DNA of 23,033 nucleotides, taken from the NCBI GenBank assembly GCA_033442325.1, contig JAWQFM010000030.1, forward strand, positions 582,419-605,451, read 5' to 3'. Every line of letters starts with the position of its first letter. The stretch's first letter is position 1. A program made the translations under genes and the position numbers. Positions 3,801-6,800 of this stretch are shown here, one piece after another. This DNA is from Salpingoeca rosetta. Lineage: Eukaryota > Protista > Choanoflagellata. The notes under the pieces were generated by a model. It made no database searches. It worked only from the letters and a program-made list of their open reading frames with translations, and was not told where the DNA came from.

Positions 3801-6800
3801 ATGGCTGACGGCAACAACAGCAATGGGCGTGGCCCCCGTCGCCATCGCTACCACCAGCACGCACCAATGGACGGCGCAGCGCAACAAAGAGCACGCCGAC
3901 GCCACGCGGATGACCACGGTGGTGGTCGAAGGCAGCTCTTCTTCCCCGACTTCCACGCCCCACAACAGCAACAACAGCAGCAGCAGCAGCAGCAACAACA
4001 GCAGCAGCACGAAGCGGTGGGGCAAGTTCCACAGCACCAAATGCACCACATGCACCAGCAACAGCAGCAGCAGCAGCAACAGCGTGAACAGCTTCACCAG
4101 TACCTGCAACATCAACAACACCCACAACAACAGGCACAACAACAGGCACAACCGCAGCCGCAACAGGCGCACCACCAGGATGCCCGCCATCGCATTGGTA
4201 GCGGGTATGATCTGCGCAACACTAACGGGGTTCATCCACACGAGCGCGTGTACGGGGTGTCCAGCAGTAGCGGCTCGAGTGTTTTTGGGGACGCCCCTCG
4301 CCCACAACAAGCCAACGGCGTCCACTTCAATGCCGTTTTGCGGCAACACCAACAGCAACACCAGCCACAACAGCCACCGCTGCAACAGCCACAACAACAA
4401 CACCAGCCACAACAGCAACAGCAACAACGCCAGCCGCAACAACGCCATCACCAACCACCACAACCCCAACACCAGCCACAACAATTCCGTGCTGGTGGTG
4501 GACAGTTTGCCGGCGATGCCCACCGCCTCATGCAGATGCTGCTGCACATGGCAGACCCAGACGCCCGCCGTATCATTGCGCAGTCGTTTGTGCACTTTGC
4601 TCAATCGAGGAGTGGTCAGCACGGTCAGGGCGCACGTGCTCCGCCACCACAACACCAAATGCATGGGCAGCAGCCCCAGCAACAGCAACAACAGCAGCAA
4701 CAGCAGCAACAGCACATTCACCACGCATTTGCACCAGCTCACCACCGCCGTCCTCAGCAGCCACAACAGCCGCAGGCGGGTCGCGAGCCATTGTTGCTTG
4801 ATGAGGTGCTGCATCAGCTTCCAGCAGGGCAGTTGCAACAAGGTGTGGCAGGCCAAGGGGCACAGCCACGCCCACCCTTTGGCGTGCCTGCAGGCAATGG
4901 TCCTCCTCAGCAGCATGGCCAGCCACCACAACCACAGCACAATGACGGTGGACCAAACCTGTATGCGCAACTGCTCAACCATCTTGTTCCCGGCCAACAG
5001 CGGCATCAGCAACACCAACACCAACCCCAACCCCAACGTCCACCCCATCTGCAACAGCAACAACAGCCACCACCCCCACCGCCCCCGCAACCACCACAAC
5101 AGCATCAACAACCACCATCAATGCCGGCATCGCCAGCGGCCAGTGATCGCAGCGTCCCGACCTGCCCCGTGTGCTTTGAGGAAGGACGACGCGACGCCAA
5201 GCAACAGTGCGTTTGTTGATGCGAGCGCATGCGTGTGGGTATGTATGTGTGGCGTGCGTGGGAGTGTGTGTGTGCGATGACCTTGTTTGACCACCGCGTT
5301 TGCCTGCTCATTCGTTCTTTGTTTCGAATCCACAAATGCATTTGTTCCACAGTCTGTGCCAGAGGTGCTACAACAACATCTACCAACGCATTCGTCGCGG
5401 TGTCGAACGATTGGGCCGCAGGTTCACCTTTGAGCGCTTCCAGGAATGTACGTGTGAGCATATTTGTGAAGACATTTACCGTGCCTGCATTTGTAGCGCT
5501 CACCGCTGTTGCTGATGTTGGTGCTGTTGCTGCTGCTGGTGCTGCTGGTGTGCCGGATCTCAACCGCCTCGTTTTACTTGCTGTGCTTTCTGTTTGCGCT
5601 GACATTGCGCCTGTGATGGGAAGTGCAAAGAACGTACGAAGGTTGGAAGTGCAATGTGTGTGCGCTTACGCACGTGCACGTCTCACAAGACTGCACATTG
5701 TGCCAATCAACCTCAAGGATGACACTCACACTTGACACTCACACACGACACTCATATTTGCACGTGTACTGCAGATGTGGATGAAATGAAGTGCAACTCC
5801 GACAAACGTGAGAATGCGAATGTCTTGCTTGATGGCCCCTCCTTGCTTCCCAAATGCACGTTCAAAGAGAGGTGATGTGATTGCTTCATCACCACCGCAT
5901 GATTTCTTCACTCTGACCATCGTGCTCCCGACCACACACACACACACACTCTCTCTCTCTCTCACGCACACATACATACACACCACGCGCGCACACACAC
6001 ACACATACACACACACGCACACACACACATCCACGCACACATACACACACATACATACACACATACATGCACACACGCATCTAGTTGGGCACAAGTGCTT
6101 CCACTGCCTTGCGCTCAAAGCGACTGAAGTGGCAGAGGAGGCAGTGCGGCGAAGTATGTTCACGTGCAATGCCTCTGTATCGTGTGCAGTGTGTATGACC
6201 ATGGCTGCACGGCAATGGCTGCATCTGTTGACATATCTGTTCATACATACGAGTGGTACCCCGCTCTTGCACTGCTGCCATCATCACATCACACCTGTCG
6301 CTTTCGCCGTTCGCTCACACCATTCACATCCACGGCTGCTCAACTCTGCCTGCCCTTGCACTGCATGTTCAACCACCACTTACAACGACCACTCCACCAC
6401 CACCACCAACAACAACAACAACAACACCAACAACACCCCCAACAACACCCACAACACGACCACGCCAACCAACAACATTGCCCATGCAGCCATCTCCACG
6501 GTGGTTAATCGCAAGTTCGCCAACGACAGGCGCTACGACTATGATGATGGTGACGATGAGGAGCAGCACGGCGGTGGGCGTGGCGGCGGGCACGACAGGC
6601 GCTTCCGGCGCCTCCACCGCGACGATGACGATGATGACAGTGGTCATGATGAGGATGATGATGTTGGCGGTGATGATGGTGGTGGTGGCTATGATGATCG
6701 TGAGCGGCAGCCGCTTCATCCGGGCCGCCGTCACCACCAACACCACCGCCGCCGCCGCGAAACCCATCAAGGGCACCACGCTCACCACGACCGGCAGCAA

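Follow-up and report, generated by a model that had tools for sequence, protein, structure and literature searches.

A degenerate zinc-finger module split over small exons in Salpingoeca rosetta, read as a highly divergent member of a glutamine-rich two-zinc gene family

The nuclear receptors are among the hallmarks of gene regulation in animals, and how their DNA-binding domain arose is an open question. This domain, which folds as a double treble clef with two perpendicular helices, has the spacing C-x2-C-x13-C-x2-C, a linker of 15-17 residues and then C-x5-C-x9-C-x2-C, and the GATA zinc finger has the spacing C-x2-C-x17/18-C-x2-C. The RING finger follows C-x2-C-x(9-39)-C-x(1-3)-H-x(2-3)-C-x2-C-x(4-48)-C-x2-C, with eight ligands in cross-brace order, and by the textbook pattern two ligands and at least 14 residues stand between its first two Cys pairs. 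The gene described here belongs to none of these families by any match that we could find, and it comes from the choanoflagellate Salpingoeca rosetta, which is genetically tractable. It lies at 3801-8489 on the forward strand of a stretch of 23,033 nucleotides (nt), called the window in what follows (assembly GCA_033442325.1, contig JAWQFM010000030.1, positions 582,419 to 605,451), and all coordinates given without a locus name count from the first letter of that window. Its predicted product is a glutamine (Q)-rich protein of 1200 amino acids (aa) in which a zinc-finger module is assembled from the end of one large exon and three small ones. Our reading, which we hold at a probability of about 0.65, is that this locus belongs as a highly divergent paralogue to a family of about 17 genes, and that in this copy the first zinc finger is intact, the second has been remodelled and a long extension has been added.

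The original prediction, made from the letters alone, had joined two large low-complexity exons through three small ones, and direct reading together with a script bore this five-exon model out: the frame is kept over all five exons for 1200 codons and a stop, with neither a frameshift nor an internal stop codon. The DNA is of eukaryotic type: its exons are short and its introns contain CA/GT microsatellites. Exon 1 (3801..5206, +) begins at the ATG at 3801 and reads through 468 codons of Q/H/P-rich low complexity, and it holds only two Cys, both in a CPVC knuckle (5163-5174) that is followed by x3-GR and stands 11 codons 5' of the donor. Intron 1 (5207..5352, +; phase 2, GTGCGT..CAG) leads to exon 2 (5353..5447, +; 95 nt), where the second Cys pair, CQRC, opens an Arg-rich predicted helix, LCQRCYNNIYQRIRRG..., and intron 2 (5448..5774, +; phase 1, GTACGT..CAG) leads to exon 3 (5775..5807, +; 33 nt), which carries Cys5 only. 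After intron 3 (5808..6084, +; phase 1, GTGAGA..TAG), which holds CA/CT microsatellites, exon 4 (6085..6153, +; 69 nt) supplies a His, then Cys7-x2-Cys8 (GHKCFHC) and then a helix. Intron 4 (6154..6489, +; phase 1, GTATGT..CAG) is 336 nt long and open in frame, and exon 5 (6490..8489, +) encodes a short helix, a low-complexity region that is acidic, His/Arg-rich and polyQ (50 Q), and an acidic-aromatic tail before TGA. Thus all four introns run from GT to AG, with a G at +5 of every donor. The core spacing that had been read from these exons, C-x2-C-x12-C-x2-C, 32 residues and C-x6-H-x-C-x2-C, was found again, as was the acidic-aromatic C-terminus in the exon 5 reading, and Q makes up 234 of the 1200 residues. 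Seven of the 11 Cys of the whole protein fall inside 65 residues (P of about 3.5e-5 under random placement). For exons 2, 3 and 4 no other frame had as good a codon-usage score as the proposed one, and an in-frame reading of intron 4 scored below zero. The polyQ runs of exon 1 are built of interspersed CAA and CAG codons and are homopolymeric only in the proposed frame, which fixes the reading frame of that exon.

When the S. rosetta genome was searched with an exon of the locus C30:444880 and then with profiles of that exon, 14 strong and 3 weak loci of one family were found, among them C30:444880, C30:460795, C33:234557, C36:199855, C13:1015503, C13:1454084 and C28:580865. Two family copies lie on the same contig as the present locus, 121 and 137 kb upstream of it. 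The family consists of long Q-rich proteins with a double zinc finger that is encoded by the end of a large exon (exon a) and three or four small exons (b, c, d and e), and exon 5 of the present gene corresponds to exon e. At C30:444880, on the reverse strand, a large polyQ exon ends in CPIC-x3-GR and is followed by small exons with IC-x2-C and a helix, with PRGC-x6-C, and with CTRCR. Some members have adjoining parts of the domain in one open frame, and at L050 (C13:1454084) the whole domain is uninterrupted and reads C-x2-C-x11-C-x2-C, about 45 residues, C-x5-C-x12-C-x2-C-x5-C, a short tail and a stop. The second-finger spacing of the family, C-x5-C-x12/14-C-x2-C-x4/5-C, is nuclear-receptor-like.

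The gene structure is the strongest evidence that the present locus is a member of this family, and its splice sites had been set without knowledge of the family. All four introns are in the family phase. The donor of intron 4 is in phase 1 and lies at +58 nt counted from the start of the Cys7 codon, which is where it lies in 10/10 spliced paralogues, and the acceptor of intron 1 lies 4 nt before the Cys3 codon, as it does in 7/7 spliced paralogues. The donor of intron 1 is at +44 after the first base of the Cys1 codon, in phase 2, whereas in the family it is at +41, also in phase 2 (9/9), and this shift is accounted for by the one extra codon that the present copy has between the Cys pairs of the first finger. 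The acceptor of intron 2 is 17 nt before the Cys5 codon, compared to 23 or 26 nt in the family, and the acceptor of intron 3 is 11 nt before the Cys7 codon, compared to 8 nt in the family and 11 nt in the member L049, all of these being in phase 1; introns 2 and 3 are therefore within two codons of the family positions. The size of exon 4, 69 nt, is also that of exon d in L049, while exon d has 66 nt in the rest of the family. L049 (C33:390802), which has the -11 acceptor before Cys7 as well, may be the closest paralogue of the present locus. By our own count, which is a rough estimate, two coincidences exact to the nucleotide together with two matches in phase would be expected by chance about once in 20,000.

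These coincidences bear directly on the question whether there is a module here at all, since it could be a chance stitching of open stretches in Cys-rich, repeat-laden intronic DNA, with exons 1 and 5 being separate genes or being joined in some other way. Several properties of the window speak for such an explanation and against ours. The window is rich in TG/CA repeats, 7.4% of its codons in the six frames are Cys, with 0.78 CxxC per 100 codons, and with such a background a CxxC in one small exon is weak evidence by itself. Under lax rules there are 2919 other in-frame GT-AG paths, and hence the logic of the frame alone does not single out the five-exon path. The strand is also poor in T, so that long open frames overlap in several frames, and no RNA support for the model was found. 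However, the splice sites of the model fall on the intron positions and phases of the family and exon 2 is specifically family-like (see below). The five-exon model is better than chance because its splice sites agree with those of paralogues unknown to the author of the original prediction. We consider a chance stitching quite improbable, and the split zinc-finger module is probably real.

At the sequence level the exons were compared with profiles of their family counterparts, and the decoys were 398 true CxxC-containing windows from about 250 kb of the S. rosetta genome. Exon 2 aligned to the 13-member exon-b profile (A6) with an hhalign probability of 90% and in register (1-18 to 1-18), and 0/398 decoys reached its score. 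The tail of exon 1 aligned in register to the exon-a profile (A3) with a probability of 86%, and its CPVC-FEE-GR can be aligned without gaps with 11 paralogues, CP[IV]C-x3-GR being common to all of them. Exon 4 has the register that is expected for exon d, whose family motif is [KR]-CTRCR-[ST]-[IL], usually with Cys9: in the present copy K-C-x2-C-x2-L is kept, while other residues stand in the places of T, R and R and there is no Cys9. At the junction the head of exon 5 reads h-x3-h-N-R and then acidic residues, like the tail helix of the family. On the other side of the balance, RING first knuckles score as high as the tail of exon 1 (3/400 decoys), so that the knuckle is not specific by itself, and exons 3 and 4 and the head of exon 5 gave no significant score against the family profiles. 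Compared with the family motif IC-x2-CY-x-G-h-YNDI-x-KW, exon 2 has N, D, K, W and G all replaced. Plain HMMER placed the tail of exon 1 and exon 2 at the level of noise (5.0 and 1.7 bits, respectively), and the genome-wide searches with family profiles did not return the present locus. Even with these points counted, we regard it as highly probable that the gene belongs to the S. rosetta Q-rich two-zinc family as a paralogue, and by far the most divergent one.

Database searches at the locus were run exon by exon, with exon 3 (10 full codons) and the four split codons (H, Y, L and T) left out. No Pfam family matched any of the exons searched at E up to 10, and a search of PDB sequences with exons 2 and 4 gave no match, whereas the tail of exon 1 gave 11 weak matches, 7 of which were RING proteins (E 0.7-9). 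The claim that small exons here build an unclassified zinc module thus stands, in that exons 2 and 4 are matched by no Pfam family, no solved structure and no RING profile. The open frame of exon 2 found nothing in a metagenome scan, the ESM Atlas returned only noise with exon 2 (score 0.77), and searches of the S. rosetta genome with exon 2 and with the tail of exon 1 returned only the locus itself. What has to be set against our reading is that word searches, run with exon 1 and with the frame of exon 5, and a full phmmer search with the stretch from exon 4 to the head of exon 5, found nothing, and this includes the product of the gene itself. No public protein model was found with exon 1 among models of 257-819 aa, with exon 5 among models of 491-1562 aa, or with the head of exon 5 among models of any length. 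In a control search, an open frame with a RING that lies elsewhere in the genome retrieved the S. rosetta protein PTSG_01964 at 100% identity and also a EukProt relative, which shows that the blank searches are not due to a missing S. rosetta proteome. The gene at 3801-8489 therefore appears to be unannotated or to be annotated very differently, and the 1200-aa protein is a predicted model.

The present copy departs from its paralogues in many places. The first finger has x12 where the family has x11, and none of the non-Cys residues that are invariant in the family, namely ND, KW, PRG, and T-R and R around Cys7/8, is kept. With seven Arg in about 20 residues, the helix that follows Cys4 is markedly more basic than in the family. 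What the family and the present copy have in common is the helix CY-x2-h-Y-x2-I-[RK] that is opened by the second Cys pair and the tail helix followed by acidic residues, and seven of the eight ligand Cys are kept, which together with the open frames and the intact splice sites suggests that the gene is still under constraint. Two of the differences weigh against membership. One is that the family has PRGC-x5/6-C where the present copy has EMKC and lacks Cys6; exon c of the family is 72-84 nt long and includes Cys6, whereas exon 3 has 33 nt and about 13 loop codons are gone. A His does stand at Cys5 + 7, the offset at which one paralogue (paralogue A) has Cys6. Cys9 is absent from the present copy and likewise from a few paralogues. 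The other is that 666 low-complexity aa follow the domain here, whereas most paralogues end 13-30 aa after exon d. For an internal position of the domain there is a precedent in L049/L073, where an acidic, Asn/Ser-rich low-complexity tail of 330 aa follows the zinc domain (C33:392184-393175; L073:85-1076).

At the 3' side of exon 3 the frame stays open past the donor at 5808 for 22 codons, to 5872, and at 5856 there is a GCACGT in phase 1 where the paralogues carry the donor GTACGT, the flanking DNA being similar. This GCACGT may be what remains of the ancestral donor, or it may be a working GC-AG splice site; in the second case exon 3 would have 81 nt (to 5855) and the protein would gain 16 residues, with the frame kept and Cys6 still absent. 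Longer forms of exon 3 ending at 5859 or 5871 were rejected because their phase is wrong for exon 4. The main rival to our reading is that this copy of the family is decaying, without function or not expressed, a pseudogene in the making with an already broken second finger. Cys6 and its loop are lost, family-invariant residues other than Cys are replaced, GCACGT stands where the paralogues have the exon-c donor, and no public model of the protein was found while PTSG_01964 was retrieved, all of which would be expected of such a copy. However, 1200 codons are free of frameshifts and stops, the four GT..AG pairs are intact with their G at +5, seven ligand Cys are kept with a His at the Cys6 offset, and the codon scores are positive in frame. 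Neutral loss would not spare just the ligands and the splice sites. We therefore hold decay to be unlikely, and we prefer the explanation that the second finger of a divergent paralogue has been remodelled.

A different explanation, and one that had been offered as an alternative in the original prediction, is that a RING-type E3 ligase domain has degenerated here, its cross-brace being without ligand 3. The first knuckle does look like that of a RING, with CP[IV]C in the family and CPVC here followed by acidic or small residues, and it is this knuckle that gave the 7 RING proteins among the 11 weak PDB matches. When exons of the gene were aligned to an S. rosetta RING profile with hhalign, only the first knuckle aligned, with a probability of 40% over 11 columns, while for exons 2 and 4 against the RING positions the probabilities were 0.8% and 1.8%, respectively. 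The first loop has only 12 residues and a single possible ligand, a His one residue before Cys3. A cross-brace ligand set is absent, the first loop lacks a C-x-H, and the last Cys pair is followed by a long helix, unlike in a RING. A genome scan with zf-RING_2 listed 70 loci and the present locus was not among them, nor did any exon match a Pfam RING family. No combination of donor and acceptor and no microexon in intron 1 gives the canonical C-x-H of a RING; the sole candidate microexon that would restore it leaves an intron of 17 nt and is then followed by a stop, and was rejected. The alternative donors 5211 and 5215 were rejected as well, both being weak sites that lead in addition to a low-complexity frame or to a poor acceptor. 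The paralogues carry the same knuckle in a sequential 4+4 arrangement, which is not that of a RING. A RING finger is thus disfavoured for the present copy, since only the first knuckle is RING-like, the ligands are too few and paralogy explains the CPVC, and we consider a degenerate E3 ligase very improbable.

Some further features of the large exons were noted. If exon 1 were not spliced it would continue (5207-5219) to Q-C-V-C and TGA, giving a protein of 472 aa that ends in C-x2-C-x11-C-x-C. Open frames overlap exon 1 in other frames at 3621-5111 (-), 496 aa, and at 3823-5280 (+), 485 aa; these are explained by the T-poor, CAG/CAA-rich sequence and are no evidence for further genes. The run of 50 Q in exon 5 (7065-7214) is a nearly pure (CAA)n microsatellite, with CAA at 45 of its 50 codons, unlike the mixed CAA/CAG of exon 1, and its length is probably unstable.

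As to what the product of this divergent paralogue would do, the first finger is predicted to bind zinc, and this is very likely: the CPVC knuckle and the CQRC at the N-terminus of the basic helix would together make a treble-clef site. Any second site that forms would be made of Cys5, the His two residues before Cys7, Cys7 and Cys8, so that the predicted number of zinc ions bound by the module is one or two. Treble clefs of the nuclear-receptor-like and GATA-like kinds suggest by analogy that nucleic acid would be contacted by the basic helix behind Cys4, and a regulatory or condensate-forming role in a nuclear protein would fall to the Q-rich, acidic and His/Arg-rich regions. What is new here is the most divergent and degenerate member of the family, a predicted gene for 1200 aa that is apparently unannotated. 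It is informative because of what it has kept, which is seven ligands, the intron positions and the helix after Cys4, and because of what has proved dispensable in it, which is Cys6, the loop of the second finger and the C-terminal position of the domain.

The likeness to nuclear receptors and GATA factors that had been suggested from the sequence is only partly upheld. In its favour are the second-finger spacing of the relatives and weak matches of a paralogue fold; against it, no sequence test indicates kinship of the present copy with nuclear receptors or GATA factors, and the spacings differ. The zf-C4 profile (PF00105) had no match in any exon at E up to 10, and the whole-genome scan with it gave none at the locus; the GATA profile likewise had no Pfam match in any exon, and the spacing of the first finger is 12 and not 17/18. 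The intact domain of a paralogue also matched no Pfam family, zf-C4 included, and no PDB sequence. When this paralogue domain was folded with a shallow alignment of four rows (A8), the mean predicted local confidence (pLDDT) was 70.8 and the predicted template-modelling score (pTM) 0.63. A Foldseek search with the predicted fold gave no match at E below 3, and among the weak rows that it did give were six chains of nuclear-receptor DNA-binding domains. That a predicted paralogue fold weakly but repeatedly picks up these domains is suggestive but not decisive, and it concerns the paralogue and not the truncated copy at the present locus.

Two other loci with zf-C4 scores were seen in the same genome. 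At C23:207776-208135 (-; L035:2277-2636) a Cys-rich segment in a low-complexity frame of 881 aa scored 16.4 bits with zf-C4 (cut-off 21.1) over profile positions 18-69. It has a C-x2-C-x4-C-L-x-VG-I stretch, like the end of the DNA-binding domain of nuclear receptors, and no paralogue in the genome, and its single-sequence fold, with a pLDDT of 45, was unusable. Like the present gene it has a Cys-rich double module in a long low-complexity protein, but it is without the family motifs and its similarity to the present exons is at most 4/10 residues. The other, C31:210311-210472 (L033:501-662), matched zf-C4 with 24.1 bits, which is over the curated cut-off, but it has no Cys pairs and a frame of only 95 aa, and the match looks spurious.

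The premise that zf-C4 is specific to animals is dated, as the zf-C4 domain alone has been reported in choanoflagellates (PMC6792448). It could be asked if the present gene truly belongs to the nuclear receptor (zf-C4) or GATA families. It does have two zinc clusters that are each followed by a helix, and nuclear-receptor chains recur among the weak fold matches of the paralogue. Nevertheless, neither profile matched any exon or the intact paralogue domain, the first loop is x12 and not 13 or 17-18, the linker is 32 residues and not 15-17, a P-box-like motif is missing, and all that is left of the second finger is C-x6-H-x-C-x2-C. True membership is therefore extremely improbable. The family as a whole also differs from the DNA-binding domain of nuclear receptors in having no sequence match to it, a linker of 32-45 residues between the fingers, no P-box and no ligand-binding domain. 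A choanoflagellate two-zinc family with a similar layout and no sequence match is nonetheless a candidate relative of that domain, and we think it rather improbable, though worth stating, that the family, the present copy included, is a pre-animal relative of it. If that were true, the present locus would be a natural experiment in which the second finger, on the side of the D-box, has been reduced to a Cys/His mini-site and the first finger, with the recognition helix, has been retained and made more basic, and this would suggest that the first finger is the ancestral, self-sufficient nucleic-acid-binding unit.

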